Origin: Hyalangium minutum
GTDB taxonomy: Bacteria > Myxococcota > Myxococcia > Myxococcales > Myxococcaceae
Length of the DNA stretch: 64,000 nt
Assembly (NCBI RefSeq): GCF_000737315.1
Contig: NZ_JMCB01000020.1
Coordinates: forward strand, 1-64,000
Direction of reading: 5' to 3'
The translations under genes were made by a program, and so were the position numbers. The notes under the pieces are model-generated. The model ran no database searches, was not told the origin of the DNA, and saw only the letters and a program-made list of their open reading frames with translations. Below, one piece after another: positions 26,601-48,400 of the stretch (position 1 is its first letter; each line of letters opens with the position of its first letter).

Positions 26601-26956
26601 GCCCAGACGGTGCCATCCTCGAGGACGGCGAGGCTGTGGCGCGCCCCAGCCGCCACCGTCACCACGTGCTCCAGCCCGGGCACCTGCGCGGGCGTGGTGT
26701 GGCTGCTCAGCGTCGCGTCGCCGAGCTGGCCAAAGGTGTTGTCACCCCAGGCCCACAGGGCTCCGTTCAGCGCCACATATAAGGAGTGTTGGTAGCCCGC
26801 GGCCATGCGCGGCGGTGGTGGCGGCGGCAAGGCCGGCGGCGAGGGCTTGCCCCAGGAGGGCCCCGGCATCCCCGCGGCGGCGGAGCTGGTGATGAGCCAG
26901 AGACCCAGGAGTCCCACCCACGCGCCCCTCGCCCTGACTGCGCTCGCTATCCGCAT
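23663..26956 (-). CDS. Secreted RCC1-repeat protein with 21 repeats (three 7-bladed propellers)
   Basis: 21 counted DGT.WAWG.N..GQLG units, with a linker after repeat 7; N-terminal signal and Pro-rich spacer. Confidence 0.92.
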   Translation of the reverse strand: MRIASAVRARGAWVGLLGLWLITSSAAAGMPGPSWGKPSPPALPPPPPPRMAAGYQHSLYVALNGALWAWGDNTFGQLGDATLSSHTTPAQVPGLEHVVTVAAGARHSLAVLEDGTVWAWGDNRYGQLGDGTLARRVSPVQVLGLPKVRAVAAGYEHSLALGQDGTLWAWGFNGSGQLGDGSNLQRATPVKVPLMGAVSIAAGRAHSLAVTRDGGVWSWGENVHGQLGSAAPLNRYTPDWIPSVHGVKAVAAGGRHSLALLEDGTVWTWGANTTGQLGDGSLYPSRPPAPVFGLSQVVSIAAGGAFSLAVTATGDVYAWGDNSTGQLGEGSRATRTSPVLIASGSNIVSVTAGYAHALSSSSDGTLQAWGDNGQGQLGESTGLAFSVIPIIVHGGWPQSTPPLVQRVVRSATGLEHSLVVRSDGTVWAMGLNDRGQVGDGTYLPRNTPVQVADLTNIQAVAAGYNHSLALRSDGTVWAWGDGFSGQLGNGAGTFQTTPEQVLGLTNAVAIAAGFGFSLAVRSDGTAWAWGDNLYGQLGNGTTSSAFTPVQVVGLSSIVSVSAGIGHTLAVRADGTAWAWGNNANTQLGDGTTAPRSIPVQVPGLANVRALSAGESHSLAVLEDGTVWGWGSNQAWQLGMIGHASLPTQLPNFTGAAAVAAGERHSLILLADGSVWGLGDNVHAQLGPGSSTYFPVQIPGLPAITALASNWRHTIAVDTSGTFWGWGDTGRGQLGVGTGAQVSPTQVPGLTGQRALAAWDGVSASVGLDGRLWTWGWNTSGQLGDGTTFSRGTPAPVPSLDSVQSVTTGDGHTLALRSDKTLWAWGTNLYGQLGIGSRLQEEAPVRVASLANVKAMEAEGRHTLAVLEDGSVWAWGNNSHGQLGNGTMDQEAHPLPSQVPGLTSGVDVTTGWDFSAALRADGTVWTWGTNIWGQLGDGTRTNRPTAGPVLGLTDVIQITAGGSSMLALKSDGTVWGWGNSFLDAPWDGTHPPGSVPLQIQGLSAVQQVARGDGFFMALKTDGTLWAWGINFIGELGDGTITPRSSPVQILTGVTAVEAGTFHSLAVRTDGTVWAWGDNAYGALGQEPSRAMPLSIPLP

Positions 26957-27104
26957 GTATCCCCCGTGGAAGACGCGGGGGATTCCCTACCACGATTTGT
27001 TCAGTTTTCAGCAAGGCCTGGCCCTCGCACTCACTCTGTGGAGGGCTCGACCGGGGGGGGAAGCCGTCCGGTCGAGCCCCTCGTGGAGCAAGGGGGGAGG
27101 CGAA

Positions 27105-30100
27105 TCAGGGAGTGCTCTGCGTTACCGGCACCGAGCGGAACGGCGTGCCGTTCGAGGATGCGCTCGGCGGCGTGTTCAGCAGCGCGCGGTGGTACAGCTG
27201 GCCGTTGTACTGCGTGTGCTGCGGAGCCGGCGCTCCCAGGTTCACGCTCGTGCCCGTGGGGAAGTAGCGCGACCACGTGCTGGTGGTGACGTCGTAGAAC
27301 CCCGTGGCGCAGCTCGCCCGGCCGCTGACAGGGCTCGCCTGATAGAGCCGCGAGATGTGGGTGCCCTGGGTCGAGCACACGGTGGCACTCTGGCTCGAGG
27401 GCTCGAAGGAGCTCCACAGCAGGCACCCGTCGATAAAGGTCGCGGGCGAGCCCGTCCGCTCGTTGGCGGAGGTATAGGGGATGTACCAGCCCGGAGACGT
27501 GGGAGAGGCCTCCAGCTCCGAGCCGGTCACCACGCGGCCCGCGCTGTCGAACTGCCCCACGTTCAGCAGGCTCGAGTCCGTGATCATGTTGAAGTCGAAG
27601 TTCTGCGCCTCCGCCTCGCTGTCGAACGTGCGCCAGGGGCTGCCTCCGTAGCTCCACACGCCATAGAAGCGCTGGGTGGAGAAGGTGGCCTGCTGGGTGA
27701 AGTTGAGGGTCACCCAGCTATCCACCGTCGTGCGGCAGCTCCAGGTGGAGGAGGTGCCGTCACAGGTGTACTCAAGGGCACCGTCATAGCCGTTGCTGCA
27801 GCCGTTCGCGGCGTCGTTGTCCCACGTGAGCTTCACCTTCGAGGACGCACAGCTGCCGTACGCTGGGGCCTGGCTGGAGGCGGTGCTCGCCAGCGAGTAG
27901 TTGGCGTAGGTCGTCGAGGCCGTGGACGCCAGCATGCCGCCGCGCTGCACCTCGAGGGTGGCGCGGGCCGTGCAGCCCTGCTCCGCGCAGGCGCGCGGGT
28001 TGCCCATGCGGCAGCGCGTGCCCGTGTCGTAGAGGTTCTGGCTGTCGCCGGTGCCGATGAAGGTGCGCAGGATGCCCATGTCGGGCTGCACCACGTTCGT
28101 GGCGATCTGGCTGAACGGGCTGCGCAGGGCCTCGGCGCTCCCGGAGCGGCCCGCGAGGTTCTCCGTCCGGAACGCGCGCGCCGCGTACCAGTTGTTCACC
28201 CGCTGCGTGGCGGCATCCCACTGGCCGGGCTTCCAGAAGCGCACGGCCCAGAGCTGCCCGCCGTAGTCGCCCACCGTGGCGGTGTCGAAGAGCCCATCGT
28301 TCTCCACCCCGGAGCCGTACGCCTGGCCCACGTCCGCCAGCGCCAAGCCCGCGCCCATGGAATAGCGCAGGTACGACGAGCGGCCCTGGTTGTCCCCGTT
28401 GAAGAAGCTCCACACGGTGTGGCCGCTGGCGAGGTCCACCACCGCCATGCCCCGGCCGCGGTTGTTGTACGGATCATAGCCTCCGTTCAGGGCCACCACC
28501 CAGCGCTCGCGGGCCGCGGTGCCGGAGACCATCCAAGGCGTCTCCGCCATGCCCGAGGGCTGGCCGTTGCGCACGCGCAGGGCGTCGTCCGCGCCGGGCG
28601 TCAGCGCCACCGGGCCGATGGGGGGCGACAGCGGCGCGAAGTTCGAGAAGCTCTCGCCCACCTGGAGCGCCAGCGGATCGCACGGCTGGGGCCACATCCA
28701 CAGGAAGTCTCCCTGCTGGTCGGGCGCGCGCGTCACCGCCTCGCCGGTGGCCTGGCCGAGCAGGCGCGTCAGGTCCAGCGCGAAGCGGTGCACGCCGCCA
28801 CGGCCCGTGCCGATGACCGCCACGGTGCGGTACTCCTCCCACTGCTTGCGGCCGTCCGAGGGGCCCCCGACGCCGTCGAGCCACACGTCGCGCACCATGG
28901 CGGTGCCATTCACGAGGGGGGCGTGCTTGTCGAGGTTCCCCTTCAGCCGAGGCAGCGTGTCCGGAGGGATGAAGGCCCACAGCTCCTGGCCCGTGCCCGC
29001 GTCGTACAGGCCCCGGCCCGTGGCGGGGTCCCTGCCAGTGCTCCGGCCATTGAGGAAGGCGTGGAGCATGCCGCCGTTGGAGCCCACGAGGACGACCTTG
29101 TCCCGGCCTCCTGCCGCGTCCACGTACTTGTCATACGCGTCTCCCGTGCCAGGGACTGTCTGCAGGGGGTAGCCCGTCTCCAGCGCCGTGGCGCCCTGGA
29201 AGAGCGTCGGCAGACACTGAGGGGAGAGGGCGCACGAGTCCTTGGGCAGCGGCGGCTCCACGTTGATGGGCGTGGAGTGGGCCAGGTCCTGGAGCAGGGA
29301 GGCCCGGTCGTAGTCGCGCAGGGCCGGATCCGGGTTGAGGGCATCCGCGCCTCGGTACCAGCGGATGATGACGCGGGCGCAGTCGTCTGGAGTCAGGGAG
29401 ACGAACCCCAGCTTCGTGGCCAGATCCGCGCAGCCGGTCGGGTTCTGGCTGATGCCCAGGTACTCGCGCAGGAAGGACGCGTTGGCCTCGGTGAAGGCGA
29501 TGGGCGTGTCGCGCTGATCCAGCTTTCCATCCCTGTTGCTGTCGATGAGCGTGTAGATGCTGCGGGTCCGCCACTTCTGCGAGCTGCCGGCCTTGAGCAC
29601 CTGTCCCGCCTCCCAGAAGGGCACGGCCGGGGTCCACGGCGAGAGGGTCTTCACGAAGGTGCCTGGGAGGGTCTCCGTCACGGCATCCCCCTGGGCATCC
29701 AGCAGGACCGTGTCATCGCAGTCGCCATCAGCGTTGAGGTCTCCGTAGTACGGGGAGAGCGGGTCGCACCCGAGCAGCAGCTCCTCGGCGAGCTGGAAGC
29801 GGTAGAGCGCCCCCTGCCACGGGGTGTTGGGGGGCACGGAGGCCCGCAGGCGCGGCACGAGCGCGGAGGCGGGCTGGCCCGCGGGCACGGTCTCCGTGGT
29901 GGAGGGCACGGCGTTGGCCTTCCACGCGGTGGTGTTGGGCGTGGAGGGGACGTTGACGAGCGAGTCGCGGAGGGCCTGCGACAGGCTCGCCGCATCATCC
30001 GCGATGTAATAGAGGCCGCCTCCCACCTCGGCGGTGTGCCGCAACAGGTTGCTGTTGATGCCGAAGCCCACCGTGTACGTCGCCACGCTCTGCTTGCCCG

Positions 30101-31412
30101 CGGTGTTGAAGTCCCCGACGATGGGCGGCGTGCTGCGCTGCAGGTCCTGCTCGTAGAGCAGCTTGGCCACGTCATCGAGCAAGTAGTTCGGGTTGTCGTC
30201 CGTGTAGACGGTGGGGTTGGAGCCCTTGTCACGTTCAGCGAGGGTGCCCGGGCCGCAGGGCATGGAGTCCGGGCAGTAGACCGGGCCGTTGTTGAGCGTG
30301 CGCAGCTTGGTGACCACCGTGCTGCTCAGCGTGTCGCTGTTGGGCTCGCCGTCCGAGATGATGATGACGGAGGTGGTTTGGCAGCCCCAGCACACGCTGC
30401 GGTTCTGCGAGCTGAGCGCGGAGTTCTTGAAAGCGGACGGGTAGCTGAAGCCGGTGCCAAAGCCAAACACGTCCCGGTACACGGTGTCATCCGACGTGAA
30501 GTAATAGCCCACGTTGAGCAGCGAGCGGGCCAGCGGCGTACCCGTGTTGAACGCCAGGGTGTTGATCGCGTTGATGTAGCTGGCGCGGCTGCTGTCGAAC
30601 GCGCTCGAGTCAGTGACGACCTGCTGGCACGAGGGATTCTGCGTCCGGAGCATCACGGTGTTCGGCGCGGAGGAGGAGAAGTAGCTGAGGCCCACGCGGG
30701 CGCCGCGCACGTCCTTGAGGAGCGACTTGAGCACTGCCTTGAGGGTGACGTACTTGGGCGGGTTGAAGTTGAGGTAGCGGCCCCAGAAGATGAAGTTGAG
30801 GTTCTCCAGCGGAGCCGTGTTGCGGCCAACGGTGCCCGGCACCTTGTAGTAGCCCTTGGTGCTCAGGCACGTGAGGCAGCGGAAGTACTCGCTGGCGCCG
30901 GTGGTGGACCAGTTGGCCACCCGGCTCTGGCAGACCTGCTCCTTGGAGTCCCACTGCGAGGGCGGGTTGCTCAGGTCCGCCCAGTACAGGTAGCCGTAGA
31001 ACTTGTTGTCCTGGAACAGGTTGGGGAAGCCCGTGTCCGAGCCCAGCCCCGTGCCTAAGTCCGGCGGCGGGTAACGGAAGTTCGGGTCCCACCCCCGGCT
31101 GGCCGCGAACGCATCCAGCCGCGGGTTCTCGCACCCGTTCACCGTGAGGTTGAAGAAGGCGGTGTGGTCGCTGTTCGTCACCTGCGGCAGCTCGCGCATG
31201 GAGCCCGAGTTGTCGATCAGGATGTGGAGGTTGGCCGGCGTGCTGGCCGGGAGCGCGCGCTCATCGCCTGGCGCGTCCTTGCCGTACACCACGTCCTGGA
31301 TAAGGGACGTGGTGAGCTGACAGCAGGCGGGACTGTCGGTGGAACTGCCAAGTTGCGCTGACGCGGGGCCCACGGCCGCCAGCAGCACTAGAACCAGGCA
31401 CAGGCGCTTCAT
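27105..31412 (-). CDS. pilY1: PilC/PilY1-family type IV pilus adhesin (vWA plus beta-propeller), copy B
   Basis: MKRLCLVLVLLAAVGPASA signal; MIDAS DNSGS...TPLA...SDGEP; DSNRDGKLD; collinear paralogue of copy A. Confidence 0.85.
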   Translation of the reverse strand: MKRLCLVLVLLAAVGPASAQLGSSTDSPACCQLTTSLIQDVVYGKDAPGDERALPASTPANLHILIDNSGSMRELPQVTNSDHTAFFNLTVNGCENPRLDAFAASRGWDPNFRYPPPDLGTGLGSDTGFPNLFQDNKFYGYLYWADLSNPPSQWDSKEQVCQSRVANWSTTGASEYFRCLTCLSTKGYYKVPGTVGRNTAPLENLNFIFWGRYLNFNPPKYVTLKAVLKSLLKDVRGARVGLSYFSSSAPNTVMLRTQNPSCQQVVTDSSAFDSSRASYINAINTLAFNTGTPLARSLLNVGYYFTSDDTVYRDVFGFGTGFSYPSAFKNSALSSQNRSVCWGCQTTSVIIISDGEPNSDTLSSTVVTKLRTLNNGPVYCPDSMPCGPGTLAERDKGSNPTVYTDDNPNYLLDDVAKLLYEQDLQRSTPPIVGDFNTAGKQSVATYTVGFGINSNLLRHTAEVGGGLYYIADDAASLSQALRDSLVNVPSTPNTTAWKANAVPSTTETVPAGQPASALVPRLRASVPPNTPWQGALYRFQLAEELLLGCDPLSPYYGDLNADGDCDDTVLLDAQGDAVTETLPGTFVKTLSPWTPAVPFWEAGQVLKAGSSQKWRTRSIYTLIDSNRDGKLDQRDTPIAFTEANASFLREYLGISQNPTGCADLATKLGFVSLTPDDCARVIIRWYRGADALNPDPALRDYDRASLLQDLAHSTPINVEPPLPKDSCALSPQCLPTLFQGATALETGYPLQTVPGTGDAYDKYVDAAGGRDKVVLVGSNGGMLHAFLNGRSTGRDPATGRGLYDAGTGQELWAFIPPDTLPRLKGNLDKHAPLVNGTAMVRDVWLDGVGGPSDGRKQWEEYRTVAVIGTGRGGVHRFALDLTRLLGQATGEAVTRAPDQQGDFLWMWPQPCDPLALQVGESFSNFAPLSPPIGPVALTPGADDALRVRNGQPSGMAETPWMVSGTAARERWVVALNGGYDPYNNRGRGMAVVDLASGHTVWSFFNGDNQGRSSYLRYSMGAGLALADVGQAYGSGVENDGLFDTATVGDYGGQLWAVRFWKPGQWDAATQRVNNWYAARAFRTENLAGRSGSAEALRSPFSQIATNVVQPDMGILRTFIGTGDSQNLYDTGTRCRMGNPRACAEQGCTARATLEVQRGGMLASTASTTYANYSLASTASSQAPAYGSCASSKVKLTWDNDAANGCSNGYDGALEYTCDGTSSTWSCRTTVDSWVTLNFTQQATFSTQRFYGVWSYGGSPWRTFDSEAEAQNFDFNMITDSSLLNVGQFDSAGRVVTGSELEASPTSPGWYIPYTSANERTGSPATFIDGCLLWSSFEPSSQSATVCSTQGTHISRLYQASPVSGRASCATGFYDVTTSTWSRYFPTGTSVNLGAPAPQHTQYNGQLYHRALLNTPPSASSNGTPFRSVPVTQSTP

Positions 31413-31626
31413 GAGGCGCTCCCTTCCTTGAACGGGGGAGCGCGCTCTTAACACGTTTTACTGGTTTGGCTGCAAATCAAGGGATTCCACTCCTCGTGTT
31501 CAAGCCTGGACTTCGGGTGGGGCAGGCGGGGGAAAAACCTTACGAAAACGGGCGGTTTGGCTAGAACGCGCCCGCGCTCCGGGGCGACCCGGACTCATGA
31601 ACGAACGGAACGAAGGAGTGCCTGAG

Positions 31627-32239: not shown

Positions 32240-33025
32240 ATGAGCGACTCCCCCTATTCCACCATCCTCCGCGACATCTTCCATGTGGTGGACGTCAGCG
32301 AGGATCCGGCAGAGCGGGCGAGAGCCAAGCCCGTGCCGGAGCTCACCCCCGGCTTCGAGGCGCTGGGGTTCAAGACGCTCGGCTTCTACCGGCTGGGGCG
32401 GCCGCCGGGGCACGTCTACGAAGTCTGGCGCAGCCCCGACAGCCGCGCCGTCCTCGTGGTGGAGTACGATCTCAAGAAGCGGCCGCGCGCGGAGCTGCGC
32501 ACGCTGCTCCACGACGGCACCATCATCGAGACCTCCAGCCGCTTCAGCGGCCTGTCCCGGCTGTTCCGCCGCGCCCGCCTCCACCACCCCGAGGCTGGCT
32601 ACCTCCTGGAGACCCACGCGGCCACCCCCGAGCAGCTCTACCGCCGCCACACCGAGCGCGTGGAGGCCATCGCCCGCGAGCGCAGCTCCACCATCCCCTC
32701 GCATGACTCCATGCGGCTGCTGTTCGCGCTCGTCGCGCGCTCCATGGTGCTGACGCTCAACCGGTACCACCATGGCAAGCGCCTGGAGTGGATCATCTTC
32801 ATCCCCGCCACCCTGGCCATCATCGCCGCCGTCGTCTTCGCCGGCACGCCGCTGCACTGGCTCACCGCGCTCGCCGTGGCCGCCGTGGCCTTCTGGTACG
32901 TCAGCGAGATGTCCAGCTGGCTCGCCGCGCGCCTGCTGCTGATTCCCCCCGTGCCCCTGGCCACCTTGTTGGCTGCTGTAGACGACGTCCACACCCCACC
33001 CGCCAACAGCCCCGCTCCCAGCTGA
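32240..33025 (+). CDS. Hypothetical membrane protein (two C-terminal TM helices)
   Basis: Codon bias; hydrophobic segments WIIFIPATLAIIAAVVFAG and WLTALAVAAVAFWYV. Confidence 0.8.
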   Translation: MSDSPYSTILRDIFHVVDVSEDPAERARAKPVPELTPGFEALGFKTLGFYRLGRPPGHVYEVWRSPDSRAVLVVEYDLKKRPRAELRTLLHDGTIIETSSRFSGLSRLFRRARLHHPEAGYLLETHAATPEQLYRRHTERVEAIARERSSTIPSHDSMRLLFALVARSMVLTLNRYHHGKRLEWIIFIPATLAIIAAVVFAGTPLHWLTALAVAAVAFWYVSEMSSWLAARLLLIPPVPLATLLAAVDDVHTPPANSPAPS

Positions 33026-33154: not shown

Positions 33155-33856
33155 ATGCGCTCCCTGCCCGTTCACCGCGTCTCTTGGAAGGCGTTGCTCG
33201 CTCTGTCGCTCTGTATCTCCGCGCTGCCCGCCTGGGCGGACACGCGGATCGGCGTGGGGCTCGATCTGTTCACAGAGAGCTCGCGCATGGAGGGCCACCA
33301 GACGATCAACACCGCGCGCCAGGATGAGTCCTTCGACTACCGCAGCCAGAGCTTCCTGTCGGCCACGCTGAACCTGAGCATCCCCGCCCCCATCTCCGAG
33401 AAGGCGCGCATGGGCGCAGGCCTGCGCTTCCTGGGCAACTACGGCTCGGGCGGCGAGGGCAACCGCATGTTCGGCTTCGGCCTGCTCAACGAGCTGTACC
33501 TCCTGGGCGAGTACGGGCTGCCCGTGGCGGACAAAACGGAGGCGGTGTTCGGCGCGCGCGGAGGCGTGGCGCTGCTGGTGCCCGGCAAGGAGTTCGACGC
33601 GGAGATCTCCCGCCTGCGCGAGCAGGGCGTGAGTGCGTGGCACGTACCACGCGTGGGCTGGCTGGGAGGCATCTCCGTGGGTGCGCGCCGGCGCCTGGGC
33701 GAGCACGTGCTGGTGCGCGGGGACTTCTCCGGCCAGCTCGAGAAGGTCTTCCTGTTTGCCACGAGCCAGGACATCAAGGGGCTCGAGTTCGAGAAGGCTT
33801 GGAGCACATTCGGTCTTCGCCTGGGGTTCACCCTGGGCGTGGAGTTCGCCCTCTAG
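33155..33856 (+). CDS. Outer-membrane beta-barrel protein, first gene of the DUF1501 operon
   Basis: Signal peptide ending AWA; amphipathic strands; C-terminal LGFTLGVEFAL. Confidence 0.72.
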   Translation: MRSLPVHRVSWKALLALSLCISALPAWADTRIGVGLDLFTESSRMEGHQTINTARQDESFDYRSQSFLSATLNLSIPAPISEKARMGAGLRFLGNYGSGGEGNRMFGFGLLNELYLLGEYGLPVADKTEAVFGARGGVALLVPGKEFDAEISRLREQGVSAWHVPRVGWLGGISVGARRRLGEHVLVRGDFSGQLEKVFLFATSQDIKGLEFEKAWSTFGLRLGFTLGVEFAL

Positions 33857-33889
33857 CGAGGGCTTCACCCCCTACCTTGGGAGCCATGG

Positions 33890-35689
33890 ATGAAGCGTTC
33901 TCTCACCCTGGTCCTCGCCACCTTGTCCGTGCTGGCCGCCGCCTGTTGGGGCGAGCCCGCGTTTGATCCGGAGAAGCTCGCCATCGGCCCTGGAGGCCTG
34001 GTGGGCAACGGAGACACCATTACTTCCGGCGACTTCCCGGGCGGCGATGACGTGCTGCCCGCGCCGCGCCAGGTGGAGTCCCTGCCGGACGACACCCGCC
34101 CGCCAGACTGTGATGGGGCGTGCGTGTCCTACTGCAACGCGGCGAACCTGCAGAACCCGGTGAACCGCGGCCTGTGCCGCAGCCTGTGGGGCGTGGGCCT
34201 GAGCCACCAGCCCATCAACCGGGACGAGGCGTGCCGCCGGCTCTTCGTGGACATGATTGGGCGCGTGCCCTCCGCGGACGAGGCCGAGTCCACCTGCGCG
34301 GGCAGCTGGGGCGACACGGTGAAGCGGCTGATGGACACGCCGGAGTTCATCTTCGTCAACCAGCGCCACGCCGCCGACAAGTTCCTCTACAGCAACGAGG
34401 TGGTGAACATCCAAGCCATCTACGACATGGATCGGCTGATGGAGAAGCTCTACCGGGGCAAGGTGCCGTATGACCAGTTCGCCTCGGTGGTGAGCGCGCA
34501 CCCGGTGCTGATGCGCCGCTACGCGGACGCGGGCGACAAGGTGGACGCGCTGTTCAAGCTGTTCCTGGGCCGGCCGCCCTTCGAGTTCGAGCGCGCGGAC
34601 ATGGCCCGGGTGTATGGGCTGTGGCACTCGGGCTACTACGAGCACCCGCTGCTGGGACGCATGCCGGACGCGTACCTGCGCTTCCGCTGCCTGGCGGAGG
34701 ACAACAAGGAAGTGGATCCGGTGAAGAAGGGCGAGTGCACCAGCGTGGTGTGGGGCTACCACGAGCTGGTCTTCATCCCGGATGTGCGCGCCGCGCTGGA
34801 TCCGCAGATTCGTGAGCTGACCATGTGGAACGGCCTGCTGAGCGCGGACGAGTGGGCGCAGCTGCAGACGCCGGGCCGGGTGCTCACGCAGGAGATTCCC
34901 TTCTGGGAGCACGCGGTGGACGAGGTGCTGCAGCGCTACCTGGGCTACGAGCTGTCCCCGAAGGTGCCCGAGGTTCGCGCCGAGCTGGTGCGCTGGCTGC
35001 TGCAGTACGGGGGCGACATCCGCTCCGTGCACTACGCGGTGCTCACCTCGGCCGCCTACCTCCAGTCCGCCTACGGCACCACGCCCACCTCGTACCGGTG
35101 GGCGTATGGGCCGCTCAAGCAGATGGACGCGGAGGTGTGGATCGACTCCATGGCGCTCAACAGCGGCTACGCCACAGCCAACTGCGACCACCGCATCGCC
35201 CAGCCGGAGACCCTGCTGCGCAACGGCAGCATCGCCTCGTACCGGGTGCTGAAGGCCTCGCGGTGGAACATCAACGACAAGGGAGACCTCGACGAGAGCT
35301 ACGCCAACCTGGCGCGCACGCTGGGCGGCTGCCCGGAGAACATCGTCGGCGGGCGCTTCCGGGTGGTGAGCATCCTCACCACGGGCACGCAGCTCTCCTT
35401 CGTGGGAGACCTGTGCAACCCCACCATGAGCGCCCAGGTGCAGGGCGCGCCGCTGGAGCGGCTGCTCCCGGAAGGGGTGGAGGGGGGCAGGGCGCTGACG
35501 GCGGATCTGGCGGTGCAGATTGCGCAGAATCAGTACCGGACGCTGCTGGGCCGCACGCCCTCGGACGAGGAGCTGACCGAGGCGCGGAACGCGGGTACGC
35601 AGTGTGCCTTGGACAAGTGCAGCGCGGAGGCCTTCGCGCGTCCGCTGTGCTTCGCGCTGATGTCCAGCGCGGAGCGTCTCTTCTACTGA
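33890..35689 (+). CDS. DUF1549/DUF1553 (PSCyt2/PSD1)-like lipoprotein
   Basis: Lipobox-like LAAAC; RRLFVDMIGRVPSADE; DIRSVHYAVLTSAAYLQSA; LKQMDAEVWIDSM. Confidence 0.72.
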   Translation: MKRSLTLVLATLSVLAAACWGEPAFDPEKLAIGPGGLVGNGDTITSGDFPGGDDVLPAPRQVESLPDDTRPPDCDGACVSYCNAANLQNPVNRGLCRSLWGVGLSHQPINRDEACRRLFVDMIGRVPSADEAESTCAGSWGDTVKRLMDTPEFIFVNQRHAADKFLYSNEVVNIQAIYDMDRLMEKLYRGKVPYDQFASVVSAHPVLMRRYADAGDKVDALFKLFLGRPPFEFERADMARVYGLWHSGYYEHPLLGRMPDAYLRFRCLAEDNKEVDPVKKGECTSVVWGYHELVFIPDVRAALDPQIRELTMWNGLLSADEWAQLQTPGRVLTQEIPFWEHAVDEVLQRYLGYELSPKVPEVRAELVRWLLQYGGDIRSVHYAVLTSAAYLQSAYGTTPTSYRWAYGPLKQMDAEVWIDSMALNSGYATANCDHRIAQPETLLRNGSIASYRVLKASRWNINDKGDLDESYANLARTLGGCPENIVGGRFRVVSILTTGTQLSFVGDLCNPTMSAQVQGAPLERLLPEGVEGGRALTADLAVQIAQNQYRTLLGRTPSDEELTEARNAGTQCALDKCSAEAFARPLCFALMSSAERLFY

Positions 35690-35707
35690 GTCACGGAGCC
35701 ACGAGCC

Positions 35708-37117
35708 ATGTCCGACGACACGAAGAAGCCAGGAACGCTCGGCCGCCGAGGGCTGCTCAAGGGGCTGGGAGCCGCCGCCACCGCCGCGGCCTTCCCCACG
35801 CTGTGGCTGCCGAACAAGGCCTACGCGCAGACTGCTGCCCGCGGTGAGGTGGAGCACCTCATCTACATCCGCCTCGCGGGCGGCTTCCGCTTCACCACCG
35901 CCTTCAACGGGGATGTGGCGGACACGTTCAACCCGTTTGGGAAGTCCGCTTCGCGGGCTGCGGGCACGGAGTGGGGCCCCAGCGCCATGCTGGAGCGCGC
36001 CAGCTGGCTCGAGGGCACCGAGGGCGAGCCCCGCGTCGAGCTGGGCATGCAGAAGGTGACGGACTTCTCCAACGAGATTTGCTTGCTGCCGTGCGTGGAC
36101 CACGAGCCGTTCTCCGCGCGCGCGGACGGCAACCACGGCACGGGTCTGGAGCGCTTCCTCACCGGCTACGTGGGTGGCACCACCAGCTTCTTGACGTACC
36201 TGAACTACGGGCTGCGCGAGAAGGTGGCGCAGGAGGCGTCCGAGGGCCGCACCATCCTGCCGGCTTTCAGCCTCGGCGAGGCGGGCATGGCGCTGGGCAG
36301 CGGCATCTATGCCGGCTACCGGCCGCCGGTGCTGGACGGCAACGGCTTCGAGCGGTTCGGGTTCGATCCGGACTCGAACGTGCCAGCCTGGGCGGTGAAC
36401 ATCGCCAACAATCTGGACCAGCGCTTCCGGGACAAGGTGCACCAGGGCGTGCGCCCGGGCGTGGAGGCCTACCAGCAGACGCGCGAGGCCACGCGGGCCT
36501 ACGGCGCCATCTTCCGGGACCCCATTCTGCGGGTGGACGCGTTCTCGCAGGAGGTGGTGGACGGCATCAGCAATCGCGATCTGGTGACGATGTTCGGGGA
36601 CCAGGGGGCGGGCCGCTCCGCGCTGCTGGCGCTGCGGCTGTTCCACTTTGGCTGCCCGGCGGTGTTCCTCAACCAGGGCTTCTATGACTTCCACTCGAAC
36701 GAGGACGATGGGCTCTCGGACGAGATGGACGAGGCCAACCGGCTGATCAGCGGCCTGCGGACGGCGCTCAAGAAGATGACGCACCCCAAGGGCGGCACCT
36801 ACTGGGACAAGACGCTGGTGGTGCTCGGCAGCGAGTTCGGCCGCACGGGCAACGGCAGCAAGTTCAACTCGGCGGGCGGCAGCGACCACTCCAGTGATTT
36901 GGCCACGCGCTGGATGTCCATGCCGATGATGGGCGGCATCATCGACCGTGCAGCCAAGGGCGGAAAGATGCTCGGCCAGACGCGGTCCTCGGACCTGAAG
37001 GCCCTGGGCCAGGTGTACTCCTACCGCGCTGTGTGCAAGACGATGCTGGACTTGCTCGGCGCGGACCACAGCACCGTCTTCCCGGCGGACAACCCGATCC
37101 AGGATCTCTTCGCATGA
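35708..37117 (+). CDS. DUF1501-family Tat-exported protein
   Basis: GRRGLLKG twin-arginine signal; LAGG; YDFHSN; VLGSEFGRT. Confidence 0.85.
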   Translation: MSDDTKKPGTLGRRGLLKGLGAAATAAAFPTLWLPNKAYAQTAARGEVEHLIYIRLAGGFRFTTAFNGDVADTFNPFGKSASRAAGTEWGPSAMLERASWLEGTEGEPRVELGMQKVTDFSNEICLLPCVDHEPFSARADGNHGTGLERFLTGYVGGTTSFLTYLNYGLREKVAQEASEGRTILPAFSLGEAGMALGSGIYAGYRPPVLDGNGFERFGFDPDSNVPAWAVNIANNLDQRFRDKVHQGVRPGVEAYQQTREATRAYGAIFRDPILRVDAFSQEVVDGISNRDLVTMFGDQGAGRSALLALRLFHFGCPAVFLNQGFYDFHSNEDDGLSDEMDEANRLISGLRTALKKMTHPKGGTYWDKTLVVLGSEFGRTGNGSKFNSAGGSDHSSDLATRWMSMPMMGGIIDRAAKGGKMLGQTRSSDLKALGQVYSYRAVCKTMLDLLGADHSTVFPADNPIQDLFA

Positions 37118-38478
37118 TGCGCTCCACGACTGCTTCCGTGATTGCCGCGCTCCTGCTGGGGTGCGGCGGCTCCAATGTCTACAAGGAACCCGAGGGCCCC
37201 ATCCCCTTCGAGCCCACGCGTCCGGACGTGGGCTCTCCCGGGACGGTGACGCCGTACACGGGCTCGGACCCGGTGGTGCTCGAGGCGCAGATGAAGCTGC
37301 CCACGGGCGTGGACCTGCAGCGCAAGGTGATTCTGCGCACGTGCGGCCCCACCAACGGCGTGTGCCACAACCAGAAGGAGTACCCGGACCTGCACACCAC
37401 GGGCACGTTCGCGGACGCCATCAACGCGCCATGCAACCTGCAGCCGGGCACGTACGAGTCCGTGTATGACCGGTGCGAGCGGGTGGGGGACAGCTTCAAC
37501 TTCGGGGACAAGTCCTTCCCGGCCATGGAGCTGGGCTGGTACGAAGTCATCGTCGGGGCCTTCGTGGAGTACGAGGACGACGACATCCCGCCGGTGGACG
37601 CGGCGGGCCTGCACCTGCACTTCAAGGACCCGGTGCCGCTGGATCGGAGCCGGGCGACCTGGGGAACGGGCACGTTCCTGCGCAAGTTCGTCAACGCGCA
37701 GGGCCAGGTGGAGAACCTGTCCTTCGCCAACTACAACACGCGCTGGTGGGTGCTGGAGGACGGGCGCCACCTCTACGGCGAGGTGCACGACTACCAGGCC
37801 GAGGACGTGGAGGAACTGCAGAAGGTCGGCATCATCCAAGGTGACTGGAACCGGAACGGGCACTTTGGGGCGCGAGAGAACAAGGGCGTGCCGCTGCTGA
37901 ACCCGGGCAAGCCGGAGGAGAGCTACCTGGTGGCGCGCCTGCGCGGGCACATGCAGGGCGAGCCGATTCCGGGCACGCGCATGCCGCTGGCGAACCAGCC
38001 GCCGTCGGTGACGGACATGCTGGCGCTGATGTGCTGGCTGGAGGGGCTGGATTCGAACGCCACCTCGTGGAACCTGGCCTCGCCGATCAACTATGCGGGG
38101 TGCTCGTACTCGGCGAACCCGCAGGCGCTGAACCTGGTGGGCGCGGGGGTGACGTGGCGCGAGCGCGTGTGGCCCATCCTCAAGTCGAGCTGTGGCGGGT
38201 GCCACGGCGGAACCAACCCGCAGGCGGGGCTGGATCTGCTGTCGGATGGGGCGTGGACGCGGCTGCGCGGCGTGTCCACGCAGAACAGCACGCTCAAGTA
38301 CATTGATGCGGGCCGTCCGGAGAAGAGCTACCTGTGGCTGAAGCTGGCGGGTGACGGCAGCACCATCGGCAGCCGGATGCCGTTGGATCCGCTGGGGAGT
38401 GGCAGCCGGTCGTTGCCGGCGGACCAGCTGGACAGCATCCAGACGTGGATTCTCGCGGGCGCGCTCGAGGACGGGTAG
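37114..38478 (+). CDS. Diheme c-type cytochrome lipoprotein with planctomycete cytochrome C (PSCyt1)-like domains
   Basis: ATGA overlap with DUF1501 stop; lipobox LLGC; CGPTNGVCH and CGGCH; two G.PE.SYL...RMPL motifs. Confidence 0.75.
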   Translation: MMRSTTASVIAALLLGCGGSNVYKEPEGPIPFEPTRPDVGSPGTVTPYTGSDPVVLEAQMKLPTGVDLQRKVILRTCGPTNGVCHNQKEYPDLHTTGTFADAINAPCNLQPGTYESVYDRCERVGDSFNFGDKSFPAMELGWYEVIVGAFVEYEDDDIPPVDAAGLHLHFKDPVPLDRSRATWGTGTFLRKFVNAQGQVENLSFANYNTRWWVLEDGRHLYGEVHDYQAEDVEELQKVGIIQGDWNRNGHFGARENKGVPLLNPGKPEESYLVARLRGHMQGEPIPGTRMPLANQPPSVTDMLALMCWLEGLDSNATSWNLASPINYAGCSYSANPQALNLVGAGVTWRERVWPILKSSCGGCHGGTNPQAGLDLLSDGAWTRLRGVSTQNSTLKYIDAGRPEKSYLWLKLAGDGSTIGSRMPLDPLGSGSRSLPADQLDSIQTWILAGALEDG

Positions 38479-38723
38479 TGCTCAGACCTCCAGGTCCCGG
38501 CAGCGCAGCGTTAGGGTTGGGCACTGGAGCGTGTAGAAGCAGCACAGCCGGGGATCGGTGACCGGGAAGAGCCGGCCACCGGTCACATCAGAATCATCCG
38601 CGCGTGGGTTTGTGACGCGGTTGCCCGCCGCCGGTCTGCTTGTTCACTTGGCTGGTGCTGGTTTGAGGCGAGAGCTGCCGGGGCCGTAGTCTCGGAGGCT
38701 GGCTCAAACGAAAGGAGTCCTTC

Positions 38724-38879
38724 ATGAAGCGGCGATCGGGACAGGCGATTGTGGCCCTGCTGGCAGGTCTCAGCACGCTGGCGAGCGGGGCTGCACGAGC
38801 TGAGCCGCCACTGACGCGAACTCCTGGGTGCATCAAGCGTGGATGGCCTGGAACGGTCGCCTGCGGAAACACTGCGTGA
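38724..38879 (+). CDS. 51-aa secreted peptide with two Cys (below the ORF-track cutoff)
   Basis: AAAGGAG RBS at 38711-38717; MKRRSGQAIVALLAGLSTLASGAARA-EPPLTRTPGCIKRGWPGTVACGNTA*. Confidence 0.55.
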   Translation: MKRRSGQAIVALLAGLSTLASGAARAEPPLTRTPGCIKRGWPGTVACGNTA

Positions 38880-38939
38880 CATGCACGAGCGGTGAATCCG
38901 TGACGGGGAAAGCGTTGATGTTCCACACGCTGCCGTTCA

Positions 38940-39341
38940 GTGCTCGCCTGGGGCCTTTCTGTGGGTGACCCCTCGTGGGAGCAGGAGGCGGTCCGGGTCT
39001 CTGAAGCTCTCAACCTCTTGGTTGTACTGGCCGCGCCCATTCTCTACGCACGTTGGCGCACCCAAGCACCGCCTGCGGAGCTTCGCTTGGTCCTCGAGGC
39101 GCGTATGGCGGCTCTCGCGGCCTTTTGCGCAAGTGCGCGAGGGAGCCCGGATGCGGAGCGTTTCCACAGGGCGGCTCCTCAACTGCGGGCGTTCTCCGAG
39201 GCAGTAGCTCGAGAACCTCCTGAGAGCCTCCCGGAATCGGGGTGGGTCATCCAGGCCCGGGAGTGCCTCGCGACTTTGGGCCTCGAGACTCCTCCCGGCG
39301 GCTGGGAATCCTTTAGAGGATGGTCTGCTGGCGGTGAGTGA
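38940..39341 (+). CDS. Hypothetical protein (start uncertain)
   Basis: Plausible helical protein filling an otherwise empty gap; stop converges on the next gene. Confidence 0.5.
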   Translation: MLAWGLSVGDPSWEQEAVRVSEALNLLVVLAAPILYARWRTQAPPAELRLVLEARMAALAAFCASARGSPDAERFHRAAPQLRAFSEAVAREPPESLPESGWVIQARECLATLGLETPPGGWESFRGWSAGGE

Positions 39342-39394
39342 CTCGGCCTCTCTGGCCCGATGCGCAACTGGTCTGCTTGTCGGACAGGTTCGCT

Positions 39395-40002: not shown

Positions 40003-41382
40003 TTAGCGGCTGATGGTCAGCTTCAGGTGCTGGGTGACCGGGATGCCGTAGACCGACGAGCCCACCTCACGGACGTTCATGTCGGTGTCGGCCATGCCCA
40101 TGTTCGCGCCCGACTGCTGCGGGCCCGTGTTGGGGCCGATGCCCAGTTCCTCGGACAGCTCGGTGCCCGCGTCATACAGGCGCAGCGCGGAGCTGAAGTC
40201 CCCCATCACCGGCTGCTCCATGGCGTCGAACAGGGCGATGCCTTCCGAGCTCGTGCCGAAGAACCAGTCGTTGGACATGCCGTACATCGTCACGAAGGAG
40301 AGCTTGTCACCGGGGCGCGCGCTCACCTCGAAGGTGTAGGCCGAGCCGGGACGCAGCGGGCCAGGGCTGCTGGCGCCCTCGGGGGTGTTGAACACGCCCA
40401 GCATGTCCTGCGCGGAGACGTGGCCCTTCATGGACTCATAGAGCGAGGTGACGTTGCCCTCCTCGGCGATCCGCTCCAGGCCCATGCCGCTGTCCGGCTT
40501 GCCCACCGAGAACAGCGTGTGCCCGGATGCGGTGACCAGGAAGAGGCCCGGAGACACGGGCGTTGCCGTGCCGGTGGTGCTGGCCAGCTCGGCCGCCAGC
40601 CCCGTCACCTGGCCCATCTCGGCGATGGCCTCGAGGCCCAGGCCGCGATCCTTCTGGCCTTCGGTGAAGAGGGGCTCGCCGCCCGCGGTGAGCGTCCACA
40701 CGCCCGGAGAGACGCGCACGGGCTTGGGGCCCTGCGACGTCTGCAGCGTGGACTTGTCATCGGCGACGTTCTCGATGCGCACGGTGAACTGGCGGGTGGC
40801 CGCGTTCGGGGTGACGGTGACGCGGATCATCGCGGCCACCGCGGGCACGTCGAACATCGTCCCGTTGCTCAGCGTGGTGGGCGAGGTGACGCGGCGCACC
40901 GTGGCGTTGGCATCCGCGGCGCCCGGGCCGTCCAGCGAGGAGCCCTGGTTGGGGCCGGTGTGCGCGCCCACGGCGGGCTCCTCGTCCACCTCGGTGCCCG
41001 CGTCATAGAGGTACACGCGCGCGGTGACGTCGCCGGAGATGGGGTTGCCGTTCTCGTAGAGCTCGAGGCCGCCAGCGGCCGGGGCGAAGAACCAGTCATT
41101 GGACTGGCCGAGCATGGACGCGAAGGCCAGCTTCTGGCCCTTACCGGCGGTGAAGGAGAACTCGTAGGCCTCACCCGGAGCCAGGGGGCCGGGCGCGGTG
41201 CCGCCCACGCGGGTGTTGTAGACGCCGGACTTCAGCTGGGTGAAGGGAACCACGTTCTCGAGCCGCACCTTGAAGGTGGTGGGCTCCACGGGCTGCTGGG
41301 GCTCGTCCTCGCCGCCGCAGGCGGAGGCAAGGAGGGCGGAGGCAAGAAGGGTGGATACACGTCCAGCGTGCGACTTGATCAT
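40003..41382 (-). CDS. Spondin_N-domain lipoprotein
   Basis: Lipobox LASAC; two SNDWFF...YDAGTE motif sets. Confidence 0.85.
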   Translation of the reverse strand: MIKSHAGRVSTLLASALLASACGGEDEPQQPVEPTTFKVRLENVVPFTQLKSGVYNTRVGGTAPGPLAPGEAYEFSFTAGKGQKLAFASMLGQSNDWFFAPAAGGLELYENGNPISGDVTARVYLYDAGTEVDEEPAVGAHTGPNQGSSLDGPGAADANATVRRVTSPTTLSNGTMFDVPAVAAMIRVTVTPNAATRQFTVRIENVADDKSTLQTSQGPKPVRVSPGVWTLTAGGEPLFTEGQKDRGLGLEAIAEMGQVTGLAAELASTTGTATPVSPGLFLVTASGHTLFSVGKPDSGMGLERIAEEGNVTSLYESMKGHVSAQDMLGVFNTPEGASSPGPLRPGSAYTFEVSARPGDKLSFVTMYGMSNDWFFGTSSEGIALFDAMEQPVMGDFSSALRLYDAGTELSEELGIGPNTGPQQSGANMGMADTDMNVREVGSSVYGIPVTQHLKLTISR

Positions 41383-41474
41383 GACACAGCTCCGATGTGC
41401 GGGGAGAGAGGGAGTGCCGCCGGCGCGGCGGCCACTCGCCGTTCTGTACGCAGGAGCCAAAAGGCGGTTACGCA

Positions 41475-41498
41475 CCCCTCCCAAAAAAACGGGAGGGG
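41475..41498 (-). terminator. Probable terminator of the kinase-TPR-DUF4215 operon
   Basis: CCCCTCCC / GGGAGGGG stem 27 bp after the DUF4215 stop, with flanking partial pairing. Confidence 0.5.
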
Positions 41499-41524
41499 GC
41501 GTTACACCTCGGGAGACAGGGGCA

Positions 41525-44326
41525 CTACTGGCAGGTGTTCGTCGTGGTGCTGCACGTGCCGGAGGAGCAGTCGTCGTTTTGCGCGCACCCGGTGCCCGCG
41601 GCGCAGTCCAAGCCACCACCGCCGGACATGCCGCTGACCGTCAGACGGGAGCTGGAGGCATTGGTCAGGATGTTCTGGTTGCCGCGAGCGCCTGGGAGAT
41701 CATTGGTGAGGTCCACGTTGGCGCCCGAGACCACGGCGGTGATGCGCAGTTCCGTGGTCACGGCGTTGATGGCGGCGGCGGTCGCCACCGCATAGCTGTT
41801 GTTCGAGTTGGCTGCCGAGACATTGATGGGTTTGTTGGCGCCCGTGACGCTCCCATCCCGGTCGAACTCGAAGACCAGCGCGGGATTGACGCCGTCCGAA
41901 ATCGTGAACGTGTTGCCCGAGATCTGGGTGTAGTTGACCATGGTGACGCGCCCGGTGGCGGCGGTGAGCCGGTTCTGGGTACACGTGGCGTTGCAGGTGC
42001 CGCAGGCGTTGTTGTTGCCGTCGTCACACGTCTCGGTGCCATTGAGGACGCGGTCACCGCAGTAGGGCCCGTTGAGGTTGAGCACGGTGGTGCAGGCGGC
42101 GTTGCACCGGGCGCACGTGGGCGTGCCGTAGGGGCAGGAGGTCTCCGTAATGGTGTTGCCGTCGTCGCACGTCTCGGGGCCATTCACCGTGCCGTCGCCG
42201 CAGCGGGGGCCCGAGAGGTTGAGCGTGGTGGAGCACGAGGCATCGCACTGGGTGCACGAGGCCGTGCCGTAGGGGCAGGAGCTCTCGGTGGTGTTGTTAC
42301 CGTCGTCGCACGTCTCGGTGCCGTTCTGAGTGCCGTCGCCGCAGTAGGCGCCAGTGAGCGAGATGGTGGCAGAGCACGTAGCGTTGCACCGCGTGCACGT
42401 CGGGCTGCCATAGGGGCACGAGGTCTCCGTGGTGGCATTGCCGTCGTCACACACTTCAGGGCCGTTCACCGTCCCGTCGCCGCAGCGGGGGCCGGTGAGG
42501 TTGAGCGTGGTGGAGCACGAGGCATCGCACTGGGTGCACGAGGCCGTGCCGTAGGGGCAGGAGCTCTCGGTGGTGTTGTTGCCGTCGTCGCACGTCTCCG
42601 GGCCATTCCGGGTGCCGTCGCCGCAGTAGGCGCCGGTGAGGGTCAGCGTGGCCGCGCAGGAGGCGTTGCACAGGGTGCAGTTGCGCGTGCCATAGGCACA
42701 CGCTGTCTCGGTGGTGTTGTTGCCGTCGTCGCACGTCTCCGGACCGTTGACGGCGTTGTCGCCGCAGTAGGCGCCGGTCAGCGTCAGCGGCGTGGAGCAC
42801 GAAGCATCGCACTTCGTGCAGTTGCGCGTGCCGTAGTCACAGGCCGTCTCGGTGGCGTTGTTGCCGTCGTCGCACGCTTCGGGGCCGTTCCGGGTGCCGT
42901 CGCCGCAGTAGGCGCCGGTGAGAGGCAGCGTGGCCGCGCAGGAGGCATTGCACAGGGTGCAGGTGCGTGTGCCATAGGCGCACGCCGTCTCCGTGGTGTT
43001 GTTGCCGTCGTCGCACGCCTCGGGGCCATTGGTGATGTTGTCGCCGCAGTAGGGGCCATTGAGGTTGAGCGGCGTGAGGCAGTCCGCGGTGCACTTCGTG
43101 CAGTTGCGCGTGCCGTAGTCGCAGGCGTTCTCGGTGGTGTTGTTGCCGTCGTCACAGGCCTCGGGACCGTTGGTGATGGTGTCGCCGCAGAAGGGGCCCG
43201 TGAGGGGCAGCGCGGCCGAGCAATCCGCGTTGCACTGGGTGCAGGTGCGCGTGCCGTAGGAGCAGGTGGTCTCCGAGGTGGTGTTGCCGTCGTCGCACGC
43301 CTCCACCGCCGGTCCCTGCCGATCCTGGAAGCCGTCGCCGCAGCGGTTCAGCCTGCACGTGGTGAGGCAGTCGTCGTCGTTGCTGGAGTTGGCGTCGTCG
43401 CACGCCTCCCCGGCCACCGTGTTGCGCTTGCCGTCGCCGCAGTTGGAGAGGGTGCAGTCGCTGTTGCAGGTGACGGTGCTGGCGCCCACGCTGGGCACCT
43501 CGCACTCCTCGCCCGCGGCCGGGTTGACGATGCTGTCGCCGCACACGGGCAGCGTGCAGTCCAGGTCGCACGGCGTCGAGGTGTCTCCGTAGTCGCACTC
43601 CTCGACGCGGGGCTCCTCGGTGTCCTTGAAGCCGTCACCGCACCGGGCCAGCAGGCACTGGTTGTTGATGGACACGCAGTTGTCCGTGTTGACGGTGTTG
43701 CCGTCGTCGCACTCTTCATCCGGGTCGCGCGTGTTGTTGCCGCAACCCTCGCCGGACTTGCAGTCGGAGCTGCAGCCGTCGCCGCTCAGGGTGTTGCCGT
43801 CGTCGCACACCTCGCCCGTGATGGTGTCCTCCACCCCGTTGCCGCACGTCTCATTCGAGCGGCAGTTGGCGCTGCAGCCGTCTCCGGACTGGATGTTCTT
43901 GTCATCGCAGACCTCGCCCACGGCGGTGTCCACGGTGCCATTGCCACACAGCTCCGTCGACTTGCAGTTGCTGCTGCAGCCGTCCTTGTCCCGGGTGTTC
44001 CCGTCGTCGCAGACCTCGCCCACGGCCAGGTCCACCTTGTCGTTGCCGCAGCGCTCGTCCGAGGAGCAGTCCTTGCTACAGCCATCCCCGTCCACGATGT
44101 TGCCGTCGTCACAGACTTCGCCCGAGTCGACGACGCCGTTGCCGCAGGCCGTCTGGATGCAGATCGGCTGGTTGGCGGCGCATGTCTGGCCTTCGGGGCA
44201 CACGAGCCCGTTGGGGCAGAGGACGCTTGCGGGCTCGAAACAGGAGGCCAGCGGAAGGGCCAGGAGCACCAGCGCCAGCAGGCCCCTTGGGCCGCTGCCG
44301 GCAGGTGCGGGGGTAACGCGGTTCAT
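41525..44326 (-). CDS. Myxococcus Cys-rich (DUF4215) repeat surface lipoprotein
   Basis: Lipobox LASC; many CG.G....GE.CDDGN units; nine 47-aa tandem repeats; distinct C-terminal domain. Confidence 0.9.
42029..43297 (-). repeat. Nine tandem 141-bp (47-aa, six-Cys) coding repeats with a 282-bp higher-order period
   Basis: Units 2/4, 3/5, 6/8 and 7/9 are near-identical; e.g. GCAGCGGGGGCC recurs at 42200 and 42482. Confidence 0.9.
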
Positions 44327-44334
44327 AAACACCT

Positions 44335-45358: not shown

Positions 45359-48400
<3,042 letters not shown>

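Follow-up and report, generated by a model that had tools for sequence, protein, structure and literature searches.

Introduction

Genes for DUF1501 proteins with a twin-arginine translocation (Tat) signal are associated with genes for PSCyt1, PSCyt2 and PSD1 proteins in Planctomycetes, Verrucomicrobia and Lentisphaerae, and the account of this module in the Planctomycetes-Verrucomicrobia-Chlamydiae (PVC) bacteria includes four-gene clusters in which PSCyt1 is a separate protein (Kamneva et al., 2012; PMC3542564). Electron transport was offered there as a guess, and no function was assigned. In Verrucomicrobia, PSCyt genes were also found near sulfatases and carbohydrate-binding modules (CBMs), with no function given (He et al., 2017; PMC5615132), and DUF1800-DUF1501 gene pairs occur in Proteobacteria, for example beside bacterial chitin synthases (PMC5122149). 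We found no functional study of DUF1501, DUF1549, DUF1553, DUF1800 or PSCyt in the literature searched. The PSCyt/PSD and DUF1501 proteins form large paralogous families in Planctomycetes and Verrucomicrobia that have been flagged as an important machinery since 2004-2012, and with dozens of copies per genome their redundancy hampers genetics in those phyla. Here, we analyze a four-gene cluster (g1 to g4, positions 33155-38478) in a stretch of 64,000 nucleotides of Hyalangium minutum (contig NZ_JMCB01000020.1, positions 1 to 64,000, hereafter the window), which carries the same domain partnership in a member of the Myxococcota.

Since this partnership was described in 2012 for PVC bacteria, separate-PSCyt1 variants included, the module is a Myxococcota variant of the known PVC PSCyt/PSD-DUF1501 kind and no wholly new system; the first-pass annotation of the window had called it undescribed. 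As in the PVC module, a Tat DUF1501 gene adjoins a PSCyt2-PSD1 gene, PSCyt1 belongs to the set and all products are exported. The differences are nevertheless considerable. PVC bacteria have dozens of paralogues, whereas there is one module per locus here; PSCyt1 is not fused to the N-terminus of the PSCyt2/PSD1 protein but resides in a separate downstream lipoprotein of two units, one of them with a C-x6-CH motif; and CBM, WD40 and Big_2 domains are absent. Furthermore, g2 scores below the Pfam thresholds, g3 belongs to a clade with a GGxR motif, and the module is associated with a small outer-membrane barrel. The DUF1800-DUF1501 pairs likewise combine a Tat DUF1501 protein and a partner in one operon, but the partner in the present case is PSCyt2/PSD1-like without a DUF1800 match, and a third, cytochrome-like gene is obligatory. 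This minimal myxobacterial version, with three obligatory genes, one copy per related locus and no further copy in the window, is carried by soil predators that can be cultured, Stigmatella, Archangium and Cystobacter among them, and offers a new handle on an old question.

Gene organization and synteny

The four-gene cluster is a real unit, and its g2-g3-g4 triad is conserved across Myxococcota. Third-position GC values (GC3) of 0.87-0.92 back four consecutive genes on the + strand (Table 1), and the junctions that had been read from the sequence proved exact, with gaps of 33 nt between g1 and g2 and of 18 nt between g2 and g3 and an ATGA overlap between g3 and g4. Export signals are carried by all four products, which confirms the Sec, lipoprotein, Tat and lipoprotein routes proposed for g1 to g4, respectively. 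The DNA segment, part of a myxobacterial chromosome, has a GC content of 68%, and the nearest named relatives of the encoded proteins are found in Hyalangium species (80-86% identity). No paralogues of g1 to g4 were found elsewhere in the window, and Rfam detected no RNA element in it. Promoter and terminator scanning gave no result and is uninformative at 68% GC.

To place the unit among its relatives, genomes were scanned at one genome per species, and 30 loci were obtained from Myxococcaceae, Archangiaceae, Polyangiales, Nannocystaceae and Bradymonadales. The g3 gene follows g2 in 27/27 loci that reach that far, g4 follows g3 in 24/24, and the same g2-g3-g4 order is present on two further large contigs. 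Because the order recurs at every testable related locus, its recurrence in these sequences is far beyond chance. The linkage of g1 is looser. A search with a g1 hidden Markov model (HMM) located a homologue immediately next to g2 at 21 loci, sharing its strand at 16 and divergent at 5, and in the vicinity of g2 at two others (L027 and L031), and g1 is accordingly linked to the triad in 23 of the 28 testable Myxococcota loci; no homologue was detected by the HMM at L018, L020, L030 and L033/L034. Of the four-gene synteny that had been anticipated, the strict association of g4 with g2 and g3 therefore stands, while that of g1 does not. We also sought other gene families conserved around the unit among the Myxococcota loci and found none; the triad unit is thus self-contained.

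Further relatives form a sister clade of 19 metagenome loci (L035-L053, e.g. L039:4163-9812), in which g3 is 30-40% identical. The g2-g3-g4 order is kept there at every point where enough DNA is available, and 18 of the 19 loci have a g4 homologue. No g1-like barrel was found among them. At least six of these loci (L039, L040, L041, L044, L045 and L048) encode, after g4, a conserved lipoprotein of about 350 residues that resembles von Willebrand factor A (VWA) proteins and has a Thr/Gly/Asp-rich linker. Since g1 is missing from 5 of 28 loci and from the sister clade while the triad order is kept wherever testable, sequence comparison identifies g2-g3-g4 as the conserved core and the fourth gene as a clade-specific accessory.

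Several other genes adjoin the unit at individual loci. In the window, a co-oriented 261-aa gene (32240-33025) lies 129 nt upstream of g1; it has no Pfam match and was set aside as probably no member of the unit, being conserved at one related locus only (L006). Two Nannocystaceae loci without g1 (L018:5573-6565 and L020:2137-3129) have a co-oriented 331-aa open reading frame (ORF) upstream of g2, again with no Pfam match, whose end is separated from the g2 match by about 0.3-0.5 kb. In the sister clade, L044:9778-11700 encodes a PSD3-PSD5-PSD4-PSCyt3-PSD2 protein, the other type of 'planctomycete' module, directly after the triad, while a 583-aa multihaem cytochrome is encoded directly upstream of the triad at L045:2248-3996 and a second g4-like fragment is located further upstream at the same locus (L045:3-506). 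Among the best 120 matches listed for g1, g2 and g4, the named ones come from Hyalangium, Stigmatella, Archangium, Cystobacter, Melittangium, Vitiosangium, Aggregicoccus, Persicimonas and Lujinxingia, and Myxococcus and Corallococcus do not occur; a loss of the module in the latter two, well-sequenced genera is hinted at.

Table 1. Genes of the unit and conserved sequence features, with positions in the window.
Feature	Positions	Strand	Description
g1	33155..33856	+	233 aa; predicted Sec-exported small outer-membrane beta-barrel
g2	33890..35689	+	599 aa; lipoprotein, divergent PSCyt2 (DUF1549) and PSD1 (DUF1553)
g2 Cys19 codon	33944-33946	+	invariant cysteine of the lipobox LAAAC
g3	35708..37117	+	469 aa; Tat-exported DUF1501 protein of the 'GGxR' clade, presumed catalytic subunit
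g3 R13-R14 codons	35744..35749	+	twin-arginine pair of the Tat signal, motif GRRGLLKGLG
g3 G58-G59-F60-R61	35879..35890	+	GGxR, invariant in both g3 alignments
g3 D327-x-H329	36686..36694	+	candidate metal ligands; invariant in 32 clade members and in 45 sequences of both clades
g3 S392-D393-H394	36881..36889	+	candidate metal ligands; D393-H394 nearly invariant in the clade
g4	37114..38478	+	454 aa; lipoprotein, two homologous PSCyt1-type cytochrome-c-like units
g4 C77-GPTNGV-C84-H85	37342..37368	+	C-x6-CH of the N-terminal unit; invariant in 25 orthologues and 18/18 sister-clade homologues
g4 M290-P291	37981..37986	+	candidate distal Met of the N-terminal unit; invariant
g4 C360-GG-C363-H364	38191..38205	+	canonical CxxCH of the C-terminal PSCyt1 unit; invariant among orthologues
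g4 M422-P423	38377..38382	+	candidate distal Met of the C-terminal unit; invariant, aligns with the MP motif of FoxE

Properties of the encoded proteins

The g3 product matches DUF1501 (PF07394) with 77.1 bits against a gathering cut-off of 27 (E 1.9e-21, profile positions 40-370 of 390), and the family is also matched by all 32 aligned diverse members of the g3 clade. The twin-arginine pair is present in 27/27 orthologues and nearly invariant across the wider clade, and the first 35 positions of the g3 family profile align with the Tat leader of NapA. When 1.84 billion representative proteins were searched with phmmer, only 189 matches were obtained at E<=1e-3, and on this basis g3 is placed in a small and divergent DUF1501 clade. 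No plasmid-borne DUF1501 match was found by tblastn of g3 against plasmids.

We take DUF1501 to belong to the alkaline-phosphatase superfamily (Pfam clan CL0088), with D-x-H, SEFGR and GSDH presumably as its canonical C-terminal motifs and GGxD/GGxS presumably as the N-terminal one. The GGxR segment of g3 lies outside the Pfam match, which begins at position 40 of the DUF1501 profile. In addition to the motifs listed in Table 1, N75-P76 and R379 are invariant in the 32 clade members, the segment S375-E-F-G-R379, which corresponds to SEFGR, is invariant, and further conserved residues are D131-H132, H143, R61 and R401. We infer that this Asp/His set, together with R61, R379 and R401, would suffice to build a centre of one or two metals with a pocket for an anion. 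When the PDB was searched with the g3 sequence and profile, no relative came up, only Tat leaders.

For g2, the window copy falls just below the Pfam cut-offs for both expected families, with 22.1 bits against 29.8 for PSCyt2 (PF07583) and 27.0 bits against 28.5 for PSD1 (PF07587), the two matches lying in the expected order of PSCyt2 followed by PSD1. At E<0.01, however, 13 of 14 orthologues match PSCyt2 and 11 of 14 match PSD1, in the right order and with best E-values of 3e-8 and 2e-7, respectively. Since most orthologues match both families, g2 is by homology at the family level a divergent but genuine PSCyt2/PSD1 relative, so that the earlier DUF1549/DUF1553 assignment holds for the family although not at the cut-offs for the window copy. 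Besides the lipid-anchor Cys, g2 contains 14 cysteines and no CxxCH. Across the 14 orthologues, 14 Cys are invariant, and ten Cys together with H204, D433 and R435 are conserved to at least 97% across both clades. The conserved cysteines fit a periplasmic disulphide-bonded protein. A PSCyt1 domain is not detected in g2 by Pfam, and sequence and profile searches of the PDB gave no relative.

The lipoprotein g4 has the lipobox LLLGC. Its C-terminal unit matches PSCyt1 (PF07635) with 30.5 bits against a cut-off of 22, and with PSCyt1 in g4 and none in g2 the claim that the cytochrome domain had been split off into a separate downstream lipoprotein is borne out. The protein contains only one CxxCH (CGGCH, residue 360). 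A beta-strand-rich insertion of about 150 residues interrupts its N-terminal unit. When this insertion is removed, the N-terminal and C-terminal units align with each other in BLASTP (E 6e-7), and profile-profile alignment with hhalign gives a probability of 98% and an E-value of 2.6e-13, in a register that sets C84-H85 opposite C363-H364 and M290-P291 opposite M422-P423. As to the label 'diheme' given to g4, a second homologous unit exists, but only one of the two motifs is a canonical CxxCH while the other is C-x6-CH; judging from the motifs, a diheme nature is no more than plausible and only half canonical.

Sister-clade homologues of g4 keep the N-terminal C-x6-CH and MPLAN exactly, whereas their C-terminal unit carries C-x4-CH or is absent. 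Such homologues are encoded at L036:7382-8272, L037:3759-4727, L047:184-1833 and L050:7101-8147 and also at L038-L046. Because the N-terminal C-x6-CH is invariant while the C-terminal motif varies, the alignments mark the N-terminal unit as the conserved heart of g4. The spelling 'CX6CH' is absent from the literature searched, in which 'CX4CH' is present, and C-x6-CH may be an undescribed haem-attachment spacing or no haem site at all.

Weak matches of the g4 profile were obtained to FoxE (5mab, E 2e-3) and to the haem domain of hydrazine synthase alpha (5c2v, E 4e-3), in alignments that run via CxxCH, MP and WIxxGA. Both proteins share with the C-terminal unit of g4 the CxxCH, the distal Met-Pro and the terminal WIxxGA helix, and a tandem of two such units is found in FoxE as in g4. 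On the other hand, the E-values are only 2e-3 to 4e-3, and g4 differs in being a lipoprotein with a C-x6-CH and a large insertion and in having other operon partners. The AlphaFold2 (AF2) model of g4 is mediocre, with a predicted local distance difference test (pLDDT) score of 72, and Foldseek found no meaningful neighbour of it in the PDB (best E 0.45).

The g1 product begins with a signal helix followed by the cleavage site AWA|D and ends with EFAL; it matches no Pfam or NCBIfam family. Its AF2 model, built with 30 homologues (pLDDT 82, predicted template modelling score (pTM) 0.72), has eight long antiparallel strands, and residues 145-165, which connect strands 5 and 6, form a conserved loop that contains a helix. 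Foldseek returned 87 matches in the PDB at E<=1e-3. The best-aligning ones are OpcA, NspA, OmpA, OmpW, OprG and Pla/OmpT (probability 1.0, template modelling (TM) scores of 0.4-0.45), while the list also holds secretin and FadL barrels with TM scores of about 0.2-0.3. With about eight strands and such matches to small barrels, g1 is modelled as a closed or narrow small barrel without a wide pore. It resembles the known small barrels (the OmpA N-domain, OmpX/Ail, NspA, OmpW/OprG and OpcA) in having about eight long strands and a polar interior, and differs from them in lacking a sequence-family match, in reaching TM scores of 0.4-0.45 only and in its own conserved loop motifs DESFDY, EYGLPV and VPRVGW. 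An invariant His/Ser/Glu triad of the PagL type was not found in the g1 homologues. In many of these, proteins from Archangium and Cystobacter among them, the N-terminal region is extended by about 100 residues rich in Pro, Ala and Lys, which are missing from the window copy. The extension sits between the signal peptide and the barrel (examples P0205, P0208 and P0211), is also present in Vitiosangium homologues and in a second copy in Hyalangium gracile, and homologues that have it are labelled 'TonB' by some sources.

Predicted localisation

In M. xanthus, Lys at position +2 is reported to be the inner-membrane retention signal of lipoproteins, and Ala at +7 to mark lipoproteins of the matrix (PMC3222651). 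We found Lys at +2 in none of the 14 g2 orthologues and in none of the 24 lipobox-bearing g4 orthologues, and the +7 Ala of matrix lipoproteins is absent from g2 and g4. Because the +2 Lys is missing, both proteins are predicted to be outer-membrane lipoproteins under the M. xanthus rule. Taken together, the +2 rule, the cysteines of g2 and the barrel g1 point to the periplasmic face of the outer membrane as the site of the system. No inner-membrane component is encoded in the unit, and given this, along with the lack of +2 Lys in g2 and g4, the trans-envelope arrangement that had been suggested for it is not supported.

Possible functions of the triad

The simplest explanation, and the one that we favour at about even odds, is that the triad works as a self-contained machine of three periplasmic proteins held at the inner side of the outer membrane, with the small barrel as an accessory. 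In such a machine, g3 would fold in the cytoplasm, probably gain its metal(s) there and leave by the Tat route. It would then dock on the disulphide-rich g2, which might be an obligatory partner or a substrate-binding subunit. The g4 protein would sit beside g2 and g3 as a redox partner with one or two haems and could pass electrons to or from g2/g3 or the substrate. Overall, the machine might first carry out an oxidation or reduction and then a hydrolysis or transfer, acting on an anionic ester of the phospho- or sulfo-type. For the pairing of a cytochrome with a Tat-exported hydrolase, the Sox system would provide a precedent by analogy only: its periplasmic c-type cytochrome SoxAX and its Tat-exported metallohydrolase SoxB act successively on one substrate, whereas the proteins described here have no sequence relationship to Sox, and a SoxYZ-like carrier and a sulfur-oxidation context are absent. 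The g1 barrel would anchor or organise the complex in the outer membrane and would not be a substrate pore; in the sister clade, the VWA-like lipoprotein may be an accessory anchor and the counterpart of g1.

A more specific proposal, which we make tentatively and regard as rather unlikely, is that the triad represents a class of enzyme not recognised before, which would belong to the alkaline-phosphatase superfamily, work in the periplasm with redox coupling and have a dedicated cytochrome that attaches haem via the non-canonical C-x6-CH (and C-x4-CH in the sister clade). If true, it would give the first tractable entry to the function of the PSCyt/PSD-DUF1501 proteins of PVC bacteria, since it occurs once per locus in myxobacteria that can be cultured. 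The analysis also draws attention to two testable oddities, namely the invariant C-x6-CH and a DUF1501 clade in which Arg stands in place of the residue taken as canonical for the N-terminal motif.

A number of observations weigh against the three-protein machine. With regard to haem, the Pfam PSCyt1 model fails to detect the N-terminal unit of g4 even without its insertion, a profile of this unit alone matches no solved cytochrome, and the AF2 confidence for g4 is lowest at residues 79-88 and 287-294, which are both putative ligand segments of the N-terminal unit. Since sister-clade g4 proteins never have a CxxCH and some lack the C-terminal unit, haem binding may not be a conserved property of g4. 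With regard to the enzyme, the placement of DUF1501 in the alkaline-phosphatase superfamily is presumed, and the PDB sequence and profile searches provided no relative that could back it. The Arg of the g3 clade stands where we take Asp or Ser of GGxD/S to be usual, and the metal site may therefore be atypical. We know of no member of the alkaline-phosphatase superfamily that needs an electron carrier. Synteny is the sole argument for the formation of a complex, nothing in this analysis demonstrates the redox role that had been ascribed to the enzyme, and in the literature searched we found no experiment or structure that links these proteins to a reaction.

The canonical CxxCH being dispensable in the sister clade also favours a purely hydrolytic nutrient scavenger, in which g3 would be an esterase of the phosphatase or sulfatase type, g2 would bind the substrate, and g4, carrying no electrons, would serve for sensing (based on haem or on Cys/His/Met), as a redox switch or as a structural subunit. 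The DUF1501 membership and the conserved Asp/His clusters of g3 are in line with this explanation, and PhoD and PhoX are other Tat-exported phosphatases. The proximity of PSCyt genes to sulfatases and carbohydrate-binding modules in Verrucomicrobia (PMC5615132) points in the same direction. Yet g4 keeps its place in the gene order as strictly as g2, the invariance of its CH and MP motifs exceeds what a structural subunit would need, and the flanks of the unit show no phosphate- or sulfur-starvation context, and we consider nutrient scavenging doubtful. Given that all parts are predicted at the outer membrane, the module might alternatively remodel the envelope by modifying the head group of a phospholipid, a sphingolipid or lipopolysaccharide (LPS) at the inner face of that membrane. 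Phosphoethanolamine transferases and LtaS-type enzymes count among the members of the alkaline-phosphatase superfamily, and PagP and PagL are small 8-stranded barrels that modify lipid A. The conserved charged and polar loop motifs of g1 and the single-copy, phylum-wide occurrence of the module would suit such a role. This role is nonetheless improbable, because several loci and the sister clade as a whole lack g1, because g1 has no invariant triad of the PagL type, and because a lipid role leaves the cytochrome unexplained.

Two further explanations start from the cytochrome. FoxE, the putative iron oxidase of Rhodobacter ferrooxidans, is matched by the g4 profile in both of its domains (E 2e-3), and sets of Cys, His and Met are conserved in g4, as might be expected of a dihaem cytochrome like FoxE at the centre of a system that oxidises or handles Fe or Cu. 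However, the match is marginal and concerns a generic cytochrome-c-like domain, and the equally good match to hydrazine synthase speaks for resemblance at the level of the fold; moreover, FoxY/FoxZ-like partners are lacking, and DUF1501 and PSD1 would have no explanation, which makes metal handling very improbable. The first-pass annotation had favoured a redox-enzyme complex across the envelope with a substrate passing through the barrel or displayed at it. The co-orientation of genes for a barrel, a cytochrome-like lipoprotein and a Tat enzyme indeed recalls a trans-envelope conduit that leads substrate or electrons through the leading barrel in porin-cytochrome style, and the multihaem cytochrome gene directly upstream at one sister-clade locus (L045) could be cited in its favour. 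The MtrCAB/PCA conduits likewise cluster an outer-membrane barrel gene with a cytochrome lipoprotein gene. In comparison with them, however, g1 is far too small, as its roughly eight strands of the OmpA/OmpX/OmpW/OpcA type do not make a sheath of 20-26 strands, and the unit has neither a multihaem cytochrome nor an inner-membrane component, g4 having at most two haem motifs. The barrel is in addition neither universal nor always co-oriented: it is dispensable in relatives, being absent from 5/28 loci and from 19/19 sister-clade loci, and lies on the opposite strand in several. The modelled barrel size largely refutes a conduit, which we regard as highly improbable, and the idea of a substrate moving through g1 is not supported either.

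Genomic context

The gene context of the unit is typical of myxobacteria. The roughly 0.9 kb downstream of g4 (38479-39394) contain no GC3-supported ORF and no Rfam match. Two large ORFs upstream of the unit have no significant Pfam domain: a 1121-aa ORF (19410-22775, + strand) fails the GC3 coding screen, and a 1449-aa ORF (27105-31454, - strand) has a strong coding GC3 of 0.93. Inside the latter, ARAGORN called a 'tRNA-???' with a four-base anticodon (29235-29328), which is most likely a false positive since Rfam finds nothing there. Other genes of the window, all on the - strand, encode an 1107-aa protein with about 20 RCC1 repeats (23663-26986), a Spondin_N protein (40003-41619), a DUF4215 cysteine-rich repeat protein (41525-44332) and a Ser/Thr kinase fused to an nSTAND1 NTPase (45359-48496).

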